IMG/VR virus record: IMGVR_UViG_3300049793_000366
Span: 310,001-374,000 of that record
DNA: 64,000 nucleotides
Strand: one strand, 5' to 3'
Under the pieces are notes generated by a model that was not told the origin of the DNA, did not search any database, and saw only the letters and a list, made by a program, of their open reading frames with translations. A program made the position numbers and the translations under genes. This document shows, piece after piece, positions 10,079 to 60,831 of this stretch; position 1 is the stretch's first letter; every line of letters starts with the position of its first letter.

Positions 10079-10154
10079 GCCTATATAGTCCAACAAGAGC
10101 AGAGACAGTCGGCTTAAAATCGACACAGTAAGGGTTCGAACCCCTTTATAGGCA
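10079..10154 (+). tRNA. tRNA-Leu (TAA), atypical short variable loop
   Basis: GCCTATA/TATAGGC; GTCGG-CTTAAAA-TCGAC. Confidence 0.75.
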
Positions 10155-10164
10155 CAACATATAA

Positions 10165-10236
10165 GGATCAGTAGCTCAGTGGTAGAGCAAGTGACTGTTA
10201 ATCACTAGGTCGTAGGTTCAAGCCCTACCTGGTCCT
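10165..10236 (+). tRNA. tRNA-Asn (GTT), U73 discriminator
   Basis: AGTGA-CTGTTAA-TCACT; canonical D and T arms. Confidence 0.85.
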
Positions 10237-10244
10237 CAAAAAAT

Positions 10245-10323
10245 AGGTATGTACCGAGCCACACTGATAATGTGGATATTCGTAGCGGTGTTGTAAACGT
10301 GGGTTCAAATCCCACCTTACCTA
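10245..10323 (+). tRNA. D-armless tRNA-Ile (GAT)-like RNA with expanded variable region
   Basis: Acceptor AGGTATG/CTTACCT; only 7 nt before the anticodon arm CCACA-CTGATAA-TGTGG; intact T arm. Confidence 0.6.
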
Positions 10324-10331
10324 CAAAAAAT

Positions 10332-10404
10332 GCCTGAATAGCTCAGTTGGTAGAGCGTCTGATTTGTAATCAGAAGGTCGTCGGTTCGAACCCGGCTTTA
10401 GGCT
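10332..10404 (+). tRNA. tRNA-Thr (TGT)
   Basis: Canonical cloverleaf. Confidence 0.9.
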
Positions 10405-10414
10405 CAAGTTAAAT

Positions 10415-10494
10415 GCCCAGATGGTGGAATGGTAGACACGCTGGTCTAAGAAGCCAGTGCTTTTAGCGTGAGAGTTCAAGTCTCTCTTTGGGTA
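10415..10494 (+). tRNA. tRNA-Leu (AAG)
   Basis: Type II Leu body; CTGGT-CTAAGAA-GCCAG. Confidence 0.85.
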
Positions 10495-10507
10495 CGAAAT
10501 AAAATAT

Positions 10508-10581
10508 GCACTCGTGGTCTAACGGACAAGGGCGAGAGTTTTCTAAACTCTAAGGTGGGGGTTCGATTCCCTCCGAGTGTA
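10508..10581 (+). tRNA. tRNA-Arg (TCT)
   Basis: AGAGT-TTTCTAA-ACTCT. Confidence 0.85.
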
Positions 10582-10588
10582 CAAAAAT

Positions 10589-10677
10589 TGATGATTTGCC
10601 GTAGTTGGCCGAACGGTCCAGACTGTTAATCTGGTGAGCGTTATGCTCCGTCACAGGTTCGAATCCTGTATCATCAG
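10589..10677 (+). tRNA. tRNA-Asn (GTT) with long (type II) variable arm
   Basis: TGATGAT/ATCATCA plus G73; CCAGA-CTGTTAA-TCTGG; variable hairpin GAGC-GTTAT-GCTC. Confidence 0.8.
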
Positions 10678-10682
10678 CAAAT

Positions 10683-10756
10683 AGTCGGGTAGCTCAGTTG
10701 GTTAGAGCGCCACACTGATAATGTGGAGGTCGTGGGTTCAAGTCCCGCTCCGACTA
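10683..10756 (+). tRNA. tRNA-Ile (GAT)
   Basis: Canonical cloverleaf. Confidence 0.9.
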
Positions 10757-10762
10757 CTAAAT

Positions 10763-10845
10763 GACACCATGGCCGAGTGGAGCTGAAAAGCGATAGGCAT
10801 CAGTCTGCAAAACTGATTACGGGGGTTCAAATCCCTCTGGTGTCT
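10763..10845 (+). tRNA. tRNA-Cys (GCA) with hairpin insertion in the D-loop
   Basis: U73; TCAGT-CTGCAAA-ACTGA; GCT-GAAA-AGC insertion. Confidence 0.8.
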
Positions 10846-10926
10846 CAATGGGTTCGGTTTTAGTCCGAATATGATAAGATTACCTGAGGTAGAAATACTA
10901 ATCAAGGGGCACCGAAAGAATTGAAT

Positions 10927-11011
10927 GGTTGGGTGGCGAAATTGGCAGTACGCGGTAGACTTAAAATCTACTGGTTTTAACACCGTGAGGGTTCAAGTCC
11001 CTCCCCGACTA
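10927..11011 (+). tRNA. tRNA-Leu (TAA), canonical type II
   Basis: GTAGA-CTTAAAA-TCTAC with long variable arm. Confidence 0.9.
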
Positions 11012-11018
11012 CAAATGC

Positions 11019-11093
11019 GCCTTCGTAGTCCAAACGCGCAGAGACATACGCCTTAGAAGCGTAGTGTTGTGGGTTCGAATCCCACCGAAGGTA
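11019..11093 (+). tRNA. tRNA-Leu (TAG), atypical short variable loop
   Basis: TACGC-CTTAGAA-GCGTA. Confidence 0.75.
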
Positions 11094-11104
11094 CAAACAT
11101 AAAT

Positions 11105-11176
11105 GCCCTGATGGCGTAACGGCAAGCGTTATTCTTTTACATGGAATAGGTAGTGGTTCGATTCCACTTCGGGGTA
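11105..11176 (+). tRNA. tRNA-Val (TAC), divergent
   Basis: ATTCT-TTTACAT-GGAAT. Confidence 0.7.
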
Positions 11177-11182
11177 CAAAAT

Positions 11183-11257
11183 AGTTGCATAGCTCAGTTG
11201 GTTCAGAGCATCTGCCTTACAAGCAGAGGGTCGTTGGTTCGAATCCAACTGTGACTA
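11183..11257 (+). tRNA. tRNA-Val (TAC)
   Basis: Canonical cloverleaf. Confidence 0.9.
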
Positions 11258-11265
11258 CAAAAAAT

Positions 11266-11338
11266 GCCCGTATGACGTAATCGGCAGTCGTACTTGTCTC
11301 AAAAGCAAGGTGTCTTGGTTCGAATCCAAGTATGGGTA
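11266..11338 (+). tRNA. tRNA-Leu (CAA), atypical short variable loop
   Basis: CTTGT-CTCAAAA-GCAAG. Confidence 0.75.
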
Positions 11339-11341
11339 CTA

Positions 11342-11513
11342 AACCGAAAGAGATATGTAAGGAATGACATATTCTTTCACATCAATGAAGTAATGAAGAA
11401 TATTCGAATAGTTCGGATTTACTTTGAATGTGTGGGGTGATGAGAGTGGTTAAAGACCACAAGGGATGGAAACAGTCCTGATGTTTGACAAAGCTCATCG
11501 TACTCTTTTGGTT
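11342..11513 (+). ncRNA. Multibranched ncRNA of about 170 nt inside the tRNA array
   Basis: Closing helix AACCGAAAGAG/CTCTTTTGGTT; internal stems ATATGT/ACATAT, CACAT/ATGTG, GATGAG/CTCATC, GTGGT/ACCAC. Confidence 0.65.
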
Positions 11514-11517
11514 ATTT

Positions 11518-11591
11518 AGTCACATAGCTCAGTTGGTTAGAGCATTCCCTTGACATGGGAAAGGTCACAGGTTCGAATCCTGTTGCGACTA
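11518..11591 (+). tRNA. tRNA-Val (GAC)
   Basis: TTCCC-TTGACAT-GGGAA. Confidence 0.9.
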
Positions 11592-11617
11592 CAAACATAC
11601 ATGAAGTACAAGTGTAT

Positions 11618-11691
11618 GGCGCAGTAGCTTAACTGGATATAGAGCATCTCTGTTTTAGGAGAAAGGTTTGGGTTCAAATCCCTTCTGTGTA
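11618..11691 (+). pseudogene. Degenerate tRNA (6-nt anticodon loop GTTTTA)
   Basis: D arm and GGTTCAAATCC T-loop retained; imperfect stems. Confidence 0.5.
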
Positions 11692-11699
11692 AAATATTA

Positions 11700-11783
11700 G
11701 CCGATGTGGCTCAGTGGCGACAGCACTTGCCTTGTAAGCAAGTCGTGATAAACGCATCGGGGGTTCGAGTCCCTCCATCGGCT
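11700..11783 (+). tRNA. tRNA-Thr (TGT) with long variable arm
   Basis: CTTGC-CTTGTAA-GCAAG; variable hairpin CGT-GATAA-ACG. Confidence 0.8.
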
Positions 11784-11798
11784 CATAAGAAGTGTAGT

Positions 11799-11871
11799 GC
11801 TGATATAGTTCAGTTGGTAGAACGCATCCTTGGTAGGGATGAGGTGACAGGTTCGATTCCCGTTATCAGCT
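11799..11871 (+). tRNA. tRNA-Thr (GGT)
   Basis: CATCC-TTGGTAG-GGATG. Confidence 0.85.
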
Positions 11872-11883
11872 CAAAGTAAAAAT

Positions 11884-11965
11884 GCCGTTGTGAACAGATG
11901 TGGTAATTGTGTTCGGCTCATATCCGAATTGGAAACTATTGTAGGTTCGAGTCCTACCAGCGGTA
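11884..11965 (+). tRNA. tRNA-Met or Ile2 (CAT) with enlarged variable region
   Basis: TTCGG-CTCATAT-CCGAA; 12-nt variable region. Confidence 0.75.
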
Positions 11966-12004
11966 CTAACAAATAAAAATAAACAAATAAAAAACAAGAA
12001 GACA

Positions 12005-13200
12005 ATGGGAACGAAAATTTAGACCATAAGGAACTCGGAAAGCAATTAAATCTTTTTTGCTTTTCAGAAGATGTGGGTAAGGGTCTACCACTATGGTTAC
12101 CGAAAGGTGCTATAATAAGAGAGGAATTAATTTCTTATCTTAAAAAGATACAACTCAAAATGGGTTATCAAGGAGTAGTAAGTCCACATATAGCAAATGT
12201 TAAGCTATATAAAATATCAGGACACTACGACAAGTATAAGGATCACGCATTTGGAGAGATATGTTGTCCTGGTGAAGAAAGTTATATGCTTAAACCCATG
12301 AACTGCCCTCATCATTGTCAGATTTATAAAAGTGAACCTCGTTCTTATAGAGATTTACCTTTAAGATTTGCTGAGTTTGGACAAGTATATCGGTATGAAG
12401 ATAGTGGTGCTGTTAATGGTTTATTACGAGTGCGAGGATTTTGTCAAGATGATGCTCACTTATTTTGTAGACCTGACCAAGTGAAGGTTGAAATTAACAA
12501 CATAATTAAACTCGTTCTTTATGTACTGAATGAATTTGACTTTAAAGATTTTAAAGCTCAAATATCTCTAAGAGATAGTTCTGATGATAAGTATATTGGG
12601 TCAGATGAAGTTTGGGAACAAGCGGAGTCAGCACTAATAGAAGCGGCTAAAGATAATGGATTAAACTACAATATCGAAAAAGGTGAAGCCGCGTTTTATG
12701 GTCCTAAGATAGACTTCATGGTTAAGGATTGTTTGAATAGAGAATGGCAATTAGGGTCAATACAATTAGACTATAACTTACCAGATAAGTTTGAGTTAGA
12801 ATATATTGATTCGGAAGGGAAGCCGAGTAGACCAGTTATGATTCATAGAGCGCCATTTGGTTCTTTAGAAAGATTTATAGCAATTTTACTCGAACACTAT
12901 CAAGGTAGATTACCATTTTGGTTATCACCAGAACAAGTGATGATTTTACCAATATCAGAAAAGTTTAATGATTTTTCAGATAGTATAAAGTCAAGATTAT
13001 TTGATAGCGATATCAGAGCAGTTGTAGATAGTAGGAATGAAAGATTGCCTAAAAAAATAAAAGATGCTCAATTAAATTATATCCCGTATATGATTGTGAT
13101 TGGTCAGAAAGAAGTAGATAGTGGAATTTTATCAATTCGTTCAAGAGAAGGAAAAGAAGAAAAGATTGATATTGATAGTTTCATTAAAAGTGTAAAATAA
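12005..13200 (+). CDS. thrS: Threonyl-tRNA synthetase lacking the N-terminal editing domain; start apparently needs a -1 frameshift
   Basis: KPMNCPHH, YRYEDSG, RVRGFCQDDAH, AFYGPKID, MIHRAPFGSLERF; conserved DHKELGK begins at 12022, upstream of the first in-frame start (GTG 12073); ATG 12005 is out of frame. Confidence 0.9.
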
Positions 13201-13223: not shown

Positions 13224-13296
13224 GCTCTCGTAGTTTAATGGAAAGAATCACACTTTCCTAAAGTGGCGGGTAGGGGTTCGAATCCCTTCGAGAGTA
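13224..13296 (+). tRNA. tRNA-Arg (CCT)
   Basis: GCTCTCG/CGAGAGT; CACT-TTCCTAA-AGTG. Confidence 0.8.
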
Positions 13297-13456: not shown

Positions 13457-14635
13457 ATGAAAGGTTGGATAAAATCAATCAGAGAGTCCAAAGGACTACA
13501 ATTTCTCGCAGTGACGGATGGGCAACATGACCACCAGCTTACAATTAAAACAGGTGAAGCATTCATTGAGGGAAATCCGAAAGTGGGTGCTTCTTTTTTT
13601 GCAGAAGGTTTTGATTCTGTAACGCCAAGAGGTCTACCGGAGTTCGTAGTGACTAAGCTGACAATAGTTGGTGAATCAGATGATACATTTCCGATTCAAC
13701 CTAAGCATCATACGCCTGAGTTCTTAAGAAGTATTCCTGAGTTAAGGGGTAAAGCAAAAGGATTTCAAGCAACATGGAAAATCAGACATCACCTAACACA
13801 AGCGATTCATCGTTTCTTAGAAGATGAAGGTTTCTATCAGTACTACACACCGATAGTTACACACGCTGATTGTGAAGGAGCTGGTGAGACATTTGATGTA
13901 AAGAGTGATTGGATGTCAGAGAAACTAACGGTGTCTGGACAGTTACATGGTGAAGTTGGTATGATGTCTTTAGGAAAGATTTATACATTCTCACCTTGTT
14001 TCAGAGCAGAGAAGTCTTTAACTAAAAAGCACTTATCTGAATTCTGGATGATTGAACCAGAAATTGCGTTCTGTGAATTAGATGAGACAGTTGAATTTGC
14101 CGAGAAATTTGTAAAGTCAATAATTAAATATGTACTCACTAAATCAGAGTATGAATTTAAGCAACTCGGAATCGACCATCAACACCTCGAACCTCTCCTG
14201 GATAAGGATTGGAAGAAAGTAAAATATGATGAAGTATGTGAAACATTTAAGCTCACTTGGGGTCACGATATTTCATCTGAAACGGAAAAAAAGATAGTCG
14301 AGAAATGGGGACCAACATTCGTTACTGAATACCCAGAAGGATTGAAACCCTTCTATATGAAGAAAGATGGTAGAGTAGCAAAATGTTTTGATTTAATTTT
14401 CCCAGAAGTGGGTGAGTTAATCGGAGGGTCACAACGAGAAGAAGACTATGATAAAATAGTTGAGCAAATGACTCAAGCACACTTGGATCTGGATAAGATG
14501 CACTGGTATTTAGCAACACGAAAATGGGGAACAGTTCCACATTCAGGGTTCGGATTAGGTTTTGAACGTTTATTAATGTTCATCACCAAAGCAACTAAAA
14601 TTCACGATGTTATTCCTTTTCCGGTGAGCTATTAA
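13457..14635 (+). CDS. asnS: Asparaginyl-tRNA synthetase
   Basis: OB-fold KGWI, CEGAGETF, LTVSGQL, FRAEKS..KHLSEFWMIEPE, GELIGGSQRE, PHSGFGLGFER. Confidence 0.92.
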   Translation: MKGWIKSIRESKGLQFLAVTDGQHDHQLTIKTGEAFIEGNPKVGASFFAEGFDSVTPRGLPEFVVTKLTIVGESDDTFPIQPKHHTPEFLRSIPELRGKAKGFQATWKIRHHLTQAIHRFLEDEGFYQYYTPIVTHADCEGAGETFDVKSDWMSEKLTVSGQLHGEVGMMSLGKIYTFSPCFRAEKSLTKKHLSEFWMIEPEIAFCELDETVEFAEKFVKSIIKYVLTKSEYEFKQLGIDHQHLEPLLDKDWKKVKYDEVCETFKLTWGHDISSETEKKIVEKWGPTFVTEYPEGLKPFYMKKDGRVAKCFDLIFPEVGELIGGSQREEDYDKIVEQMTQAHLDLDKMHWYLATRKWGTVPHSGFGLGFERLLMFITKATKIHDVIPFPVSY

Positions 14636-14652: not shown

Positions 14653-14919
14653 ATGAATAATATTAATATAACAGAAATAGTAAAGAACGGAAAAACAGAA
14701 TTAACACACGCAGTAGCAGGAGTACTCTATTATAGAACTGATACCAATACACACAGTTATATCTATGTGATTGATATGAATGATAGAGAAGATGTAGGTA
14801 CTGCTACATTCGAAGCAAGGCCAAAAACCTTATATTTGATGCGTTGGATTCGAAAGTCCATAGAGAATAATACAATAATCGTAATTAAAAAGAAATACAA
14901 TGAAACTGAATCTAAATAA
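14653..14919 (+). CDS. Hypothetical phage protein
   Basis: 88-aa ORF in the aaRS operon. Confidence 0.6.
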   Translation: MNNINITEIVKNGKTELTHAVAGVLYYRTDTNTHSYIYVIDMNDREDVGTATFEARPKTLYLMRWIRKSIENNTIIVIKKKYNETESK

Positions 14920-16075
14920 AATAAAAACAACTCCGAAAGGAATGCCCTTTGGCTTCTGTGTGTATGGGAAACCTACACCAGAAGTCCAAGCATGGGCTTC
15001 GCATTGGAATATCAAAGAGCAAGAGTCGGGTCCATATACGAATTTCATCTTACCTGATGGCTTAAGTATCGAAGAGATTTTTGAAGAAGCAAAAACATAT
15101 GAGTGGGTCGATGGTTTTAGTCCAAATTTAAATAAACATTTGCACTTAGGTCACTTATCTAATCTGATTATAGCCAAAGCAATGCAGTCAATGAGTGTAG
15201 GTAAAAACTACATAGCGATATTGGGTGATACGCTGTCTGGTCAGGTTGATAAAACAGATGCCTTGAAGAAGTATAATGAATATTGTCAGAACTTCGGGTA
15301 TAATATCAATCAACTCATTTTCGCCTCAGAACAAAAATTATCAAATGATATTTTAGTTGATGGTGATGGTGAATATACGGGAACGAAAATATTCAATATC
15401 AATGAAGACAAAGTTGTAGGAATTAAAAGCGATGGTTCAACATCCTATTTCTATCAAGATGTCTCACTTGCTCAAAAGTTAAACGCACCAACGTTGTATT
15501 TAACTGGATTTGAACAAGTGGGGCATTTTTCGTTATTGAAACAATTATTCCCGCATATAGAACACATTGGTCTTGGATTGGTAACAGTAGATGGTAAAAA
15601 GATGTCTTCATCTGAGGGTAATGTAATCTTCGCAGAGGATATTTTCAATCAACTACTTGATAAATTTAGTGGTGATGAAAAATTAGTTTGGAATGTAATA
15701 GCTGGGCAAATTTTAAAATCTACACCAAATTCTGTTAAGAATATCGATATGAAGCAAATTGAAAATGTAAAACAATCTGCTGGGTTGTATATCTCTTATA
15801 CGATGGCACGTATGTGGTCAGCGGGTATTGAATACATTGAAACTGATACTATCGAGGATCCTGCTCTTCTTTTTAAATCAATGAAAGCGAAGTTTAACTT
15901 ACAACCGAATATTCTATTCGAAGAGGTAATTGAACATTGTAAGAAAATTAATAACTTATATATAACACACAAAATAAAAGACAACGATGCTAATACAAAA
16001 TTATTTCAATCACTCACCAACGATTTGGTGACAACGACTAAAAAATTAGGATTATTTAAAATAAATAAATTATGA
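14900..16075 (+). CDS. argS: Reduced arginyl-tRNA synthetase (class I)
   Basis: FSPNLNKHLHLGHL (HIGH), KSDGSTSYFYQD, KMSS, GLYISYTMAR; only 391 aa. Confidence 0.8.
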   Translation: MKLNLNKIKTTPKGMPFGFCVYGKPTPEVQAWASHWNIKEQESGPYTNFILPDGLSIEEIFEEAKTYEWVDGFSPNLNKHLHLGHLSNLIIAKAMQSMSVGKNYIAILGDTLSGQVDKTDALKKYNEYCQNFGYNINQLIFASEQKLSNDILVDGDGEYTGTKIFNINEDKVVGIKSDGSTSYFYQDVSLAQKLNAPTLYLTGFEQVGHFSLLKQLFPHIEHIGLGLVTVDGKKMSSSEGNVIFAEDIFNQLLDKFSGDEKLVWNVIAGQILKSTPNSVKNIDMKQIENVKQSAGLYISYTMARMWSAGIEYIETDTIEDPALLFKSMKAKFNLQPNILFEEVIEHCKKINNLYITHKIKDNDANTKLFQSLTNDLVTTTKKLGLFKINKL

Positions 16076-58700: not shown

Positions 58701-60831
58701 AAATGAATGGGAAACATTCTACAAGTGGACTTTCTTAGATGTTGATGTTAACTACTCAGCAAACCCAACAGTGAACAGCGAGAAATTATTAATTACTGAT
58801 AAGTTCTATGATGAGTCACAAGATTGGTATGTATTAGAGTTTCATAAAAAGGTTAACTACTCAACAGGTATTACTATTTCAACATTTAATGTGTTATCAA
58901 GAAATAGACTTGACCAAATATCACATGACTTAGAAGAGTTAAGTAATATTCAAAAGACCAAATCATTTAAGAATTACAATATGAAGTTCGGTCAAGATGA
59001 TACGACTACTATTCCAAATTCATGGAGCTTTAGTAATCTTCAAGGAGAGCTTAATTTTAAATTTCCTACTGATTCATATGCTTTAGCTTTTACTGCTGAC
59101 CATGATATAAAAGAATCTATTTCTGGTATCGTATATGTTGATGATAACAATCACTTAGCGTTCAATACTGTAAGATTAACTCAGCAAATTTTGGCTGATA
59201 TAAATTACTTATCACAGGATGTTAATGGATATCTTATTGTAAATACATTACAAGAACATAGACTATCTGTAATGGATGGATTCCTATTGACATTGAAACC
59301 TGCACCGGGTTCTTCTTATTATCTGAACCCGCAATATAATGGTTATCTAACTGTTAAATCAATTATTGATAAGTTCACATTTGTTGTTGACATTCTATCT
59401 GGTTCGTTTACAGTTGGTGATATCGGTACAATAGAACACTTTAAGAAAGATCCATTCTTTAATTATCAACCAGTAGATATTATTGATGTTGGTATTGATA
59501 AGAAAACAAAACGTTCAGTTGCAATTCTTCCTGAGAATGTAATCTTAGAAGGATTCAAATATAAATTAGTAAACATCGACTTAACTAAATTCAAATTTAA
59601 TTTGGTTGATGGATTGAGCTTAGAAACAATTGTGAAGAAATATTCATGGTTGCTTGAAGCTGAGATTGACAATGCAATTATTGGTGAAGATGAAAATGGA
59701 CTTGTGTGGTACATGGGTACTTGGTTCTGTGGTCGTTGGTTTGGTGGTACTTGGTACTCTGGTGAATGGCTTGGTGGTGACTGGTATGGTGGTACATGGG
59801 ATTCGACGAAGGTTGATAATAAGATACTATCAGCTAAAGTTGATACGATAGTTAAAGATAGAAAATATTCGTTATGGAAGTCTGGTCATTGGTACGCTGG
59901 TGATTGGAAAGAAGGTACTTGGTATAATGGCACTTGGTATAACGGTAATTGGTCAGATGGTGAATGGTTTAACGGTATCTGGAATGATGGTGTTTGGACT
60001 AAAGGTTCATTCATTGGTGGAACTTGGGTTGAAGGTATATGGAATGATGGTCTATTCTCATCAAGAAATAAACCGGCTTACTGGTTACATGGTAAATGGT
60101 ACGGTGGTGATTTTGAAAATGGTATTTGGTACGGTGGTACTTGGGCTCAAAATAGAGGAAAAGTATCAAGATTTGGTACGAAGCCATCTAATTCGCGACC
60201 TGCAATTTGGCATGGTGGTAAATGGTTTGCTGGTCAATTCCACTCAGTATTGAATTTAGATGAGAACGGTAAACCACAAGTTTCAGACAGACATAGTTAT
60301 TCTATATGGAATACTGGTATCTGGATGGGTGGTGATTTCTATGGTGGTAAAGCTTATAATATCGATATGCGTAACGGTAAGTGGTATGGTGGTATTATGG
60401 AAGAATTACCGATATATGGTATAGTTGCAAGTACAGCATCGACACCAGCTACGAATGCGTTCGAATTCTACGGTGAGTGGAGATTTAATAATTTAGATAC
60501 TCTTTGGATAGTAGATAACTATATAAATGGAACATCTTCATTGGGAACTACTGAAGCTCCGAAAGCTTATCAAGTTCGAGATGTTGATATTGATTATACT
60601 GTACCTGGTAAGAAAACGACAGTTTATGTATTCTATCAAGATAACACTGTTGCACTTCCTGTAACGCCTGTATTATTCAGTACCCTACCAACGGGATATA
60701 GAATCGTTTCTCACGTCTCTAAATCAAAATGGTACTCCGGTATATGGGAGAATGGAATCTTCTCGGAGAGTGAATTCTGGGGTGGTATATGGTATAATGG
60801 AGTGTTTGATAACTCCAAATGGTATACATAA
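55750..60831 (+). CDS. Large virion structural protein (tail/baseplate) with beta-propeller segments and GxW pentapeptide repeats
   Basis: IDGIRIREGHRILVKNQ..NGIY tail motif; VGDEG and TIDGGISW (BNR-like); GxWxx repeats near the C-terminus. Confidence 0.7.
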   Translation: MWSQNIDTKQWTRQEDTLPKQDYELLKQELEKTRYYSKCLHGTTYLPINRLDDAYDILGYTNESGYYVGIGTSPYAPAVSAAPYEIEINNSTNDAFTKYKAEYGHTLKNLFTPEKIIDESVKNYVFVDVATTDAIPGGLTGQKINLVIDGIRIREGHRILVKNQKTFVVLSNFVDPDTYFTGNYYINRTDALNTEYYYFGSDNGIYIYKDRTLVRESDLDTYEDCIRYSIACKMGDVNADKQWHLSRLKNGFYPLYVNGDYIEFTEKHNWILRNRVDYNNVLDINYYDIIRIPAETMKILGYTYSIPERKISVGEFGVILNVQNNVPNIIQNKYKVNLRSISKTNNYYWVVGDEGTLLRVNKLTYEIDKISLNTFNNLCSISFFNNLRGFIVGEYNTIFETIDGGISWTPIVIDEFEGFKYNKVIYYNFNKVYIGGDTGIYLELEFANGEWSVYKRTVKKIVDDDDEFDLVDDINDIIPYTWGTTNPWSLTWSGSASFGTISTTKESMILVTNRDNIIVHNINNFIEHEYLYLDYNQPVGKVNTIAANTASFYFASIDDLFYFNINQFQTVGSVSNIISMSGSYATAFGSAIPNINKLYNFNNQSLEIAGDNSELFSATYSAATQSILTTAFIDSLKSKLLFLDYEIAGKLNFFDDNQIYRIPNSIDITAATTSITITASTNEYNWLSYYKDSLKTWSYYTYSALFQLDDTNKIEFSSTFRKIGSTNTLSFTSSSMTMDPAIVVDLAPTINKYKVSNFIVGSASITAPSSPYTIYACDDILVVASNTLDALVGEILLLESSVVKANFMVNRIDIISGIRYFYCYTKLAQNILTELKASTDTITITNLNTFNNLLIDFSTRFNDHPVGVGYVTVVKGSLLTLSPIFNNFTAYYNMGTEVVIDAIPYSMYYQDSFLDFGFKPTYNLLGYLNNIDPITFTASKEFKALPRYSSVPFSDLSGGTSSFNGIYIDTNVGTNKIYFSPSLKNEWETFYKWTFLDVDVNYSANPTVNSEKLLITDKFYDESQDWYVLEFHKKVNYSTGITISTFNVLSRNRLDQISHDLEELSNIQKTKSFKNYNMKFGQDDTTTIPNSWSFSNLQGELNFKFPTDSYALAFTADHDIKESISGIVYVDDNNHLAFNTVRLTQQILADINYLSQDVNGYLIVNTLQEHRLSVMDGFLLTLKPAPGSSYYLNPQYNGYLTVKSIIDKFTFVVDILSGSFTVGDIGTIEHFKKDPFFNYQPVDIIDVGIDKKTKRSVAILPENVILEGFKYKLVNIDLTKFKFNLVDGLSLETIVKKYSWLLEAEIDNAIIGEDENGLVWYMGTWFCGRWFGGTWYSGEWLGGDWYGGTWDSTKVDNKILSAKVDTIVKDRKYSLWKSGHWYAGDWKEGTWYNGTWYNGNWSDGEWFNGIWNDGVWTKGSFIGGTWVEGIWNDGLFSSRNKPAYWLHGKWYGGDFENGIWYGGTWAQNRGKVSRFGTKPSNSRPAIWHGGKWFAGQFHSVLNLDENGKPQVSDRHSYSIWNTGIWMGGDFYGGKAYNIDMRNGKWYGGIMEELPIYGIVASTASTPATNAFEFYGEWRFNNLDTLWIVDNYINGTSSLGTTEAPKAYQVRDVDIDYTVPGKKTTVYVFYQDNTVALPVTPVLFSTLPTGYRIVSHVSKSKWYSGIWENGIFSESEFWGGIWYNGVFDNSKWYT

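Follow-up and report, generated by a model that had tools for sequence, protein, structure and literature searches.

What does a phage gain from carrying transfer RNAs (tRNAs) of the same anticodon in two different shapes? The question is raised by a tRNA array at positions 10079 to 11966 of a 64,000-nucleotide stretch of viral DNA, here called the window, which corresponds to bases 310,001-374,000 of the single 507,910-bp virus record IMGVR_UViG_3300049793_000366 (33% GC). In this array leucine-anticodon tRNAs without the long variable arm, and asparagine and threonine tRNAs with an added variable arm, lie among copies of conventional shape. The closest phages in GenBank are LR745206.1 (635 kb) and LR756502.1 (642 kb), both uncultured and both part of a huge-phage set with predicted Bacteroidetes hosts (PMC7162821). 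The window belongs to a huge phage of Bacteroidota, found in soil.

With a probability of about 0.5 we favor the view that the switched genes encode genuine elongator tRNAs maintained by selection, in which the architecture of the body was changed while the features read by aminoacyl-tRNA synthetases were kept, that these tRNAs are charged cognately, and that they would serve the phage by escaping toxins which recognize tRNA shape.

Shape and identity of the atypical tRNAs

tRNA genes were called by two independent methods, ARAGORN and the Rfam model RF00005 at its gathering threshold of 29 bits (Table 1). All tRNAs named in an earlier sequence-only reading of this DNA were recovered by both methods at the same coordinates, and the six singled out for their shape scored 42.3-59.5 bits with RF00005, all above the threshold. 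The ARAGORN structures have 7-bp acceptor stems and 5-bp T stems, with no 8/4 or 9/3 arrangement. The claim that Leu(UAA) 10079, Leu(UAG) 11019 and Leu(CAA) 11266 lack a long variable arm was confirmed by ARAGORN and Rfam: their variable regions of 5, 5 and 4 nt are shorter than a class II arm, which exceeds 10 nt. Asn(GTT) 10589 and Thr(TGT) 11700 have, as had been said, an enlarged variable region, and a stem-bearing arm was found in both. The CAT tRNA at 11884 does have an enlarged variable loop of 11 nt, but 'long arm' was too strong a term for it, as no convincing stem was seen. Conventional twins exist for Leu(UAA) at 10927, Thr(UGU) at 10332 and Asn(GUU) at 10165, the last with the U73 that had been pointed out. 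This Asn twin is conventional in its canonical shape but not in its acceptor end, which is odd (G1-C72/U73), and it is the long-armed copy that carries the standard U1-A72/G73.

The identity of the short Leu tRNAs was approached by comparison. More than 12 phage contigs supplied 39 distinct short tRNAs with Leu anticodons, and in their alignment 19 of the 20 cloverleaf pairs showed compensatory changes. A14/A15 and A73 were invariant, G1.U72 was present in 31/39, and the variable loop ended with U in nearly all sequences. None of the 54 Leu-anticodon tRNAs in the collection, whatever the length of the arm, lacked A73. When the short Leu tRNAs of the window were compared with the others, Leu tRNAs came out nearest, among them long-armed Leu(UAG) of relatives; Leu(UAG) 11019 had Leu tRNAs of both shapes as its nearest neighbours. 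The D arm of the CAA type reads GACG-UAAUYGGYAG-UCGU, which we take to match the bacterial tRNA-Leu layout of a three-pair stem and an AAUUGG loop. The dinucleotide G18G19 is seen in 11266 (AAUCGGCAG), which has a Leu-type D arm (A14 A15 ... G18 G19) and is a member of the 39-sequence family (A2). No such dinucleotide occurs in 10079 (AACAAGAGCAG), which has an 11-nt D loop and an ortholog at L003:6759 in a related phage locus, or in 11019 (AAACGCGCAG). One host-type Leu(UAA) from a Bacteroidetes metagenome-assembled genome (MAG) also has G1.U72 and A73. A73, A14/A15 and, in the CAA type, the D arm suggest that the short Leu tRNAs are tRNA-Leu lineages which have lost the variable arm.

As an observation in its own right, G1.U72 with A73 was the commonest acceptor end of Leu (44/54), Val (10/16) and Arg (10/18) tRNAs in the window and related loci, and it also occurs on some Ile, Lys and Met tRNAs of these arrays.

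A search with the CAA-type D-arm motif returned 14 IMG/VR stretches from many samples, and ARAGORN, run on these stretches, found tRNAs of 74-78 nt with UAA, UAG or CAA anticodons in them. Among 185,579 prokaryote species (one genome each) the short-Leu D-arm motif was found on two MAG contigs only, one of them a 40-kb contig of a Bacteroidetes MAG on which four genes (Leu, Leu, Ser, Tyr) form an array. Within the phage collection of GenBank, short Leu(CAA) was present only in the two uncultured huge phages, and no cultured system was found there. The short Leu family is thus widespread and essentially phage-restricted.

The added arms follow a common design: a stem of 3-4 bp, a loop that is often of the GAAA type, and 3-4 unpaired nt ahead of the T stem. 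In Asn 10589 a 4-bp stem (GAGC/GCUC) carries a loop of 5 nt and is followed by 4 unpaired nt, an arm that was reproduced by a minimum-free-energy (MFE) fold; in Thr 11700 the stem has 3 bp (CGU/ACG), again with a 5-nt loop and 4 unpaired nt. The stem sequences vary while the pairing is kept (GAGC/GCUC, GUC/GAC, AUC/GAU, GGA/UCC, ACAC/GUGU).

In E. coli tRNA-Thr is recognized by G1-C72, C2-G71 and the anticodon bases G35 and U36. All nine Thr(UGU) tRNAs collected, with or without an arm, have G1-C72, C2-G71 and U73, with compensatory changes in 16/20 pairs, and the Bacteroidetes MAG's own Thr tRNAs share these three features. Orthologs of Thr 11700 lie at L002:7431 (86% core identity) and L001:7870. 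By the E. coli rules tRNA-Asn is defined by the anticodon GUU together with G73. U1-A72/G73 occurs in 11/18 Asn tRNAs, and the long Asn genes are mostly of this kind; an alignment of seven long-arm Asn sequences (family A3) showed compensatory changes in 13/18 pairs and an invariant CUGUUAA loop. The long-armed Thr and Asn tRNAs hence share identity elements with canonical twins and with Bacteroidota host tRNAs, and their nearest neighbours are not Leu tRNAs. The long Cys genes have U73 and the long Lys genes A73. Isotype assignment by similarity to E. coli tRNAs gave no usable matches. A shared D loop AGUGGC(C)GA, together with 81% identity of the long Asn and a long Lys(CUU) copy, shows that some copying between alloacceptors takes place among long-armed genes. 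By their acceptor ends and anticodons, the long Asn and Thr tRNAs, and the long Cys, Lys and Ile tRNAs elsewhere, appear to be cognate tRNAs with a small add-on hairpin. The CAU tRNA may accept Met, Ile (via lysidine) or another amino acid.

A long arm was kept in 16/16 Ser tRNAs across all loci, while Leu and Tyr tRNAs can lose it. Because SerRS is the synthetase that requires the arm (PMC7609411), the absence of short Ser tRNAs fits ordinary synthetase rules. The number of unpaired 3' nt before the T stem is 1 in Ser, 2 in Leu and 3 in Tyr tRNAs, and Ser arms of the same phages have stems of 4-7 bp. Descent of the long-armed tRNAs from tRNA-Ser by anticodon mutation was considered, but acceptor and discriminator identity as well as the geometry of the arm speak against it.

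Three further tRNA-like genes of the interval, at 10244-10323, 10763-10846 and 11617-11693, had been overlooked by the sequence-only reading and were all added by Rfam. The Cys-like gene at 10763 has a GCU-GAAA-AGC hairpin nested inside its D loop. Its MFE structure is a cloverleaf (z-score -2.59; 0/200 shuffles fold as well), and in more distant relatives the variable arm of Cys(GCA), not the D loop, has a closely similar hairpin (L001:7780). The element at 10244 shares its anticodon arm with the neighbouring Ile(GAU) gene and has no proper D arm, a 23-nt variable region with a D-arm-like AGCGGU motif, and a weak fold (z-score -0.48). Intact long-arm Ile(GAU) genes are found at L001:6896 and L022:310, and the element is probably a rearranged, recombinant or decayed copy of the long-armed Ile tRNA of relatives.

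Conservation was assessed primarily against L044, an independently assembled close relative with a collinear array and a threonyl-tRNA synthetase (ThrRS) of 91% identity. The short Leu(UAA), the short Leu(CAA), the long Asn and the Cys with a D-loop hairpin are 100% identical between the two, the short Leu(UAG) 97% and the CAU tRNA 96% with a compensatory T-stem change, as compared to 67-90% in the intergenic spacers. The elements at 10244 and 11617 are each 95% identical to their counterparts; the T stem of the latter is perfect in L044 and has two mismatches in the window copy. In the 17 tRNAs common to both arrays 26 stem pairs differ, 20 by double compensatory changes, four by one-sided changes that still pair and two by broken pairing; in Asn(GUU) 10165 alone five anticodon-stem pairs are altered compensatorily. 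Farther off, the same tRNA families occur in L001/L045/L046, L002, L003 and L022. They recur in eight or more phage contigs, related or unrelated. Because the L044 assembly is independent and the families recur widely, the shape-switched genes are not a product of chance or assembly. On the pattern of substitutions we regard them as real genes under purifying selection.

The content of the array turns over fast. L044 has a long-armed Leu(UAG) (L044:5553-5635) between the long Thr and Thr(GGU) genes, which is missing from the window at the corresponding place (11785-11798), and Leu(AAG) 10415 of the window is not present in L044. The short form was thereby left as the only UAG-anticodon tRNA of this genome.

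Charging, benefit and rival explanations

According to the reading that we favor, the switched tRNAs would be charged with the amino acid of their anticodon, mainly by host-type synthetases, and would decode standard codons beside their canonical twins. A toxin of the host or of a rival phage which reads tRNA shape, with variable arm, elbow and D loop as the features at stake, would destroy or block the ordinary form, and the second shape would keep translation going. A second architecture would in this way be supplied for heavily used anticodons.

Escape from shape-reading toxins seems the most likely benefit by analogy with known effectors. The variable loop of E. coli tRNATyr is where the PtuAB nuclease of Retron-Eco7 cuts, and tRNATyr of phage SP15 escapes by means of a longer loop (PMC12673091). 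The toxin MenT3 picks its targets by length and orientation of the variable loop, and deletion or grafting of an arm switches targeting (PMC11541572). The switched families fit this explanation in being essentially phage-restricted, in occurring as twins and in being under purifying selection, and the switched tRNAs differ from the host-type tRNAs of the Bacteroidetes MAG in the variable arm or the D loop. The phage genome encodes an enzyme of the CCA-adding family and two genes of RNA-ligase families, which give weak contextual support to toxin escape; RtcB was not found in the genome.

Several points weigh against this reading. A shape-reading tRNA toxin was identified in none of the candidate hosts. 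The sequencing runs in which the sequence occurs are DNA only, from soil and freshwater metagenomes, with no RNA run among them. Our comparative set was largely fetched by the short-Leu motif, which biases the frequencies in it. Bacterial leucyl-tRNA synthetase (LeuRS) recognizes A73 and the tertiary core, i.e. U8-A14, A15-U48 and G18G19, while deletion of the arm mainly lowers affinity; in A. aeolicus, leucylation was strongly reduced by substitutions at G18/G19 (PMC2377443). Host LeuRS may therefore charge 10079 and 11019, which lack G18G19, poorly. Finally, shape is not constant among relatives. The window, L001 and L002 have the Thr arm and the orthologs L003:6681 and L022:916 lack it, i.e. 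it was gained or lost among clear orthologs, and the variable loop of the CAU tRNA has 7, 11 or 14 nt depending on the relative, with 85-nt homologs in L045 and L046.

Because of this variation, neutral tolerance is a serious rival, and we regard it as a tentative possibility: insertions and deletions in the variable region would be tolerated in redundant arrays wherever the synthetase ignores that region, and the odd shapes would be passengers. The fast turnover of the array, seen between the window and L044 in Leu(AAG) and the long Leu(UAG), and the existence of apparently decayed copies such as 10244-10323 agree with drift, and the lack of short Ser tRNAs would follow from tolerance alone. 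Yet the short Leu family and the long Asn family are kept in phages which differ in GC content and in CCA encoding, the arm stems remain paired despite differing sequences, independent genomes have shape pairs for the same anticodons, and relative to L044 the conservation of the switched copies equals or exceeds that of the canonical ones.

The sequence-only reading had proposed that phage ThrRS and asparaginyl-tRNA synthetase (AsnRS) may be needed as semi-orthogonal partners of the long-armed tRNAs, an idea that extends to a LeuRS-like protein of this genome. The genes of both enzymes lie directly downstream of the array, AsnRS and long-arm Asn occur together in the window genome and in LR745206.1, synthetase genes adjoin cognate tRNA clusters genome-wide, and an orthogonal phage synthetase:tRNA pair is known for a suppressor tRNA (PMC12636597). 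The phage ThrRS is truncated to catalytic and anticodon-binding domains without TGS and editing domains (positions 189-562 of the TIGR00418 profile); its relatives are about 17 truncated phage proteins, followed by full-length Bacteroidota ThrRS at 58-64% identity. The AsnRS is 66% identical to an open reading frame (ORF) at the same position of LR745206.1, while a search of viral contigs for AsnRS relatives, using N-terminal patterns only, found none. The genome further encodes IleRS, ValRS, ProRS, GlnRS, LysRS and SerRS, of which ProRS and ValRS likewise have no editing domains. The genome that has the short Leu tRNAs without GG also encodes a 421-aa LeuRS-like protein (genome 128103-129368, L005:8104-9369), a catalytic core in which editing, anticodon-binding and C-terminal domains were not detected.

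A need for these enzymes was nevertheless not borne out. The identity elements of the tRNAs are unchanged, and switched tRNAs are not confined to genomes with a matching phage synthetase. LR756502.1 has two short Leu tRNAs, one of them without GG, and an 81-nt Thr(UGU) with a long variable region, yet neither ThrRS nor any class Ia synthetase. G002, a complete phage of 369,145 bp with terminal repeats, encodes a short and a long version of each of Leu(UAA), Leu(CAA), Leu(UAG), Asn(GUU) and Tyr(GUA) without a match to PF00133, PF00152 or PF00587. From these two genomes the twin arrangement therefore appears to be a recurrent design that works with host enzymes, and we consider a semi-orthogonal function improbable.

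Deliberate mis-decoding would require that SerRS, LeuRS or TyrRS charge the long-armed tRNAs, or that the short 'Leu' tRNAs carry another amino acid, with AAY, ACA, AUG or UUR/CUA recoded. For this there is a precedent in the nev-tRNAs (PMC3333845); the long Asn tRNA resembles Ser tRNAs in G73 and G2-C71, and the CAU tRNA has A73 and G1.U72 as in Leu tRNAs. We checked the meaning of codons in the phage GlnRS gene against 116 homologs at columns conserved to at least 80%. UUA corresponded to Leu at 15/15, UUG to Leu at 9/9, CUA to Leu at 1/1, AAU/AAC to Asn at 17/19, ACA to Thr at 8/9 and AUG to Met at 9/10 positions. Codon reassignment was rejected on these standard meanings. Moreover, the long Thr has U73 and the Thr acceptor pairs, the long Asn the Asn-type U1-A72/G73, the arm geometry is unlike that of Ser, and the short Leu tRNAs are closest to Leu tRNAs. 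Mis-decoding is thus highly improbable.

A role outside decoding, as decoys or sponges that neutralize tRNA-targeting effectors or as some other functional RNA, is somewhat less far-fetched but still quite improbable. Overexpressed tRNATyr neutralizes the toxicity of PtuAB (PMC12673091), and 11617 with its 6-nt anticodon loop and 10244 without a D arm deviate from a form able to decode. The Leu, Asn and Thr families, however, strictly conserve their anticodon loops, discriminator bases and acceptor identity pairs, which counts against a decoy because a pure decoy would not need them.

An extension of our favored reading, toxin escape by cognately charged tRNAs, goes further, and we think it unlikely: huge phages would keep the whole shape-switched set, i.e. 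arm-less Leu and Tyr, armed Asn, Thr, Cys, Lys and Ile, and Cys with a D-loop hairpin, as a general defence, and in the clade of the window phage the Leu tRNAs without GG and the core-only LeuRS would have co-evolved into a minimal, elbow-independent leucine-charging pair.

The array and its genome

Table 1. Genes of the tRNA array and the two synthetase genes downstream of it (positions in the window)
Feature	Position	Strand	Characteristics	Detection
tRNA-Leu(UAA), class I shape, 77 nt	10079..10155	+	5-nt variable loop, G1-C72, A73	ARAGORN; Rfam 51.8 bits
tRNA-Asn(GUU), canonical shape	10165..10237	+	G1-C72, U73	ARAGORN; Rfam 73.2 bits
tRNA-like	10244..10323	+	anticodon arm of Ile(GAU)	Rfam 39.6 bits; missed by ARAGORN
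tRNA-Thr(UGU), canonical twin	10332..10405	+	G1-C72, C2-G71, U73	ARAGORN; Rfam
tRNA-Leu(AAG), 81 nt	10415..10495	+	small Leu-type arm (11 nt), G1.U72, A73	ARAGORN
tRNA-Asn(GUU), 90 nt	10589..10678	+	added variable arm, U1-A72, G73	ARAGORN; Rfam 48.1 bits; MFE fold
tRNA-Cys(GCA)-like	10763..10846	+	D-loop hairpin, 3-nt variable loop, U73	partial Rfam match 32.7 bits; missed by ARAGORN
tRNA-Leu(UAA), canonical class II twin, 86 nt	10927..11012	+	14-nt arm, G1.U72, A73	ARAGORN
tRNA-Leu(UAG), class I shape, 76 nt	11019..11094	+	5-nt variable loop, G1.U72, A73	ARAGORN; Rfam 55.1 bits
tRNA-Val(UAC) variant	11105..11177	+	6-bp anticodon stem, 3-nt variable loop	ARAGORN
tRNA-Leu(CAA), class I shape, 74 nt	11266..11339	+	4-nt variable loop GUGU, G1.U72, A73	ARAGORN; Rfam 53.9 bits
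tRNA-like	11617..11693	+	6-nt anticodon loop (GUUUUA)	ARAGORN anticodon 'tt'; Rfam 29.4 bits
tRNA-Thr(UGU), 85 nt	11700..11784	+	added variable arm, G1-C72, C2-G71, U73	ARAGORN; Rfam 59.5 bits
CAU-anticodon tRNA, 83 nt	11884..11966	+	11-nt variable loop, 3-bp D stem, G1.U72, A73	ARAGORN; Rfam 42.3 bits
threonyl-tRNA synthetase	12073..13200	+	375 aa	Pfam PF00587, PF03129; TIGR00418 517.9 bits
asparaginyl-tRNA synthetase	13457..14635	+	392 aa	PF00152; TIGR00457 389 bits

The Val(UAC) variant at 11105 adjoins a canonical Val(UAC) at 11183-11258 and has orthologs in L001, L003, L022 and L044. Enlarged variable regions occur elsewhere in the genome in Lys(UUU) (85 nt), Lys(CUU) (83 nt) and Gln(UUG) (82 nt); shape-switching is not confined to the interval 10079-11966. 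In total ARAGORN called 60 tRNAs across the 507,910-bp record, plus a transfer-messenger RNA (tmRNA) at 59956-60348 and a CUA-anticodon, i.e. amber-reading, tRNA at 121630-121702 of the genome. The complete phage G002 likewise has a CUA-anticodon tRNA and a tmRNA.

Further unusual tRNAs were seen. An A at the wobble position is found in Leu(AAG) 10415-10495, which is conserved in four relatives, and in an 83-nt Gly(ACC) at genome 420089-420171; to our knowledge, A34 is normally limited to Arg(ACG) in bacteria. At genome 407698-407772 ARAGORN called a tRNA whose anticodon loop is enlarged and whose anticodon has four bases (ggaa).

Two more ORFs lie in similar surroundings. A 366-aa protein encoded at genome 415861-416961 (L007:10862-11962) matched the NCBIfam family 'PheS-related mystery ligase SrmL' with 434 bits, and its gene is surrounded by synthetase genes and tRNA clusters. 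An ORF of 391 aa at 14900-16075 of the window, flanked by Arg tRNAs at 13224 and 16535, gave a weak ArgRS-like match (43 bits), and LR745206.1, L045 and L046 have a 392-aa ORF at the equivalent place.

Upstream of the array, the segment 9745-10077 of the window has an 11/12 match to a sigma-70-type promoter (TTGACA, 17 nt, TATATT), a consensus from which Bacteroidota promoters deviate. About 270 nt after this match follows a 12-bp hairpin with a U tract, ending 6 nt upstream of the first short Leu tRNA. The element could be a small RNA or a leader; a scan for promoters and terminators gave no excess over shuffled expectation.

Proteins identical to the GlnRS and ThrRS of this genome are also recorded on a 711,805-bp contig of another assembly. 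The 508-kb record, classified by IMG/VR as a 'provirus' of 97% completeness, may therefore be a trimmed piece of a phage genome of about 0.7 Mb.

Relation to known systems

In genome type the phage resembles the huge phages of Al-Shayeb et al. 2020 (PMC7162821), with hundreds of kb, dozens of tRNAs and many synthetases; a class switch of tRNAs is not described there. In the literature, of which our coverage was incomplete so that novelty is unproven, we found no earlier account of phage tRNA-Leu without the arm, nor of Asn, Thr or Cys tRNAs that bear an arm and keep their cognate identity.

Animal mitochondria are the only other place where tRNA-Leu without a long arm is known (PMC3333845), and the phage and mitochondrial molecules are alike in a variable loop of 4-5 nt and A73. 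In contrast to the mitochondrial tRNAs, the T arms of the phage tRNAs are full-size, GC-rich and canonical, the D arms are mostly canonical, and class II twins coexist with the short forms. The short Leu tRNAs of the phage are no product of erosion of the mitochondrial type. A conserved, widespread and essentially phage-confined family of arm-less tRNA-Leu breaks a near-universal rule, by which tRNA-Leu outside animal mitochondria has a long arm.

The armed tRNAs are reminiscent of the nematode nev-tRNAs in combining a long variable arm with anticodons other than those for Leu, Ser and Tyr. The nev-tRNAs derive from tRNA-Leu, carry A73 throughout and accept Leu (PMC3333845), whereas the phage Asn (G73) and Thr (U73, G1-C72, C2-G71) keep their own acceptor identity and codon meanings are unchanged. 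Allo-tRNAs and other non-canonical bacterial tRNAs (PMC5389517, PMC7609411) are likewise unusual cloverleaf variants from metagenomes. They have 8/4 or 9/3 acceptor and T stems and Ser or Leu identity, while the tRNAs of the window keep 7/5. Arms on Asn, Thr, Cys, Lys and Ile tRNAs illustrate the range of tRNA shape within synthetase rules. The twins are natural matched pairs for the shape needs of synthetases, modification enzymes, EF-Tu, the ribosome and nucleases, and the switched tRNAs are candidate scaffolds for engineered tRNAs.

Phage tRNAs have been discussed in general as agents of counter-defence (PMC10264068), and tRNALys of phage T5 counters AriB of the PARIS system (PMC11464382). 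Like the tRNAs of T5 and SP15, those of the window, as candidate counter-defence tRNAs, are phage isoacceptors with a host anticodon that are altered where a nuclease reads, in SP15 the variable loop. The known counter-defence tRNAs keep their class and differ in some bases or by a loop change of 5 nt, whereas in this phage the whole class is switched, with the arm deleted from Leu and added to Asn, Thr, Cys, Lys and Ile. If tRNA-targeting immunity is the driver, the counter-defence repertoire of phages would widen from point changes to the switching of entire architectures, and toxin escape, if true, predicts host effectors that read tRNA class.

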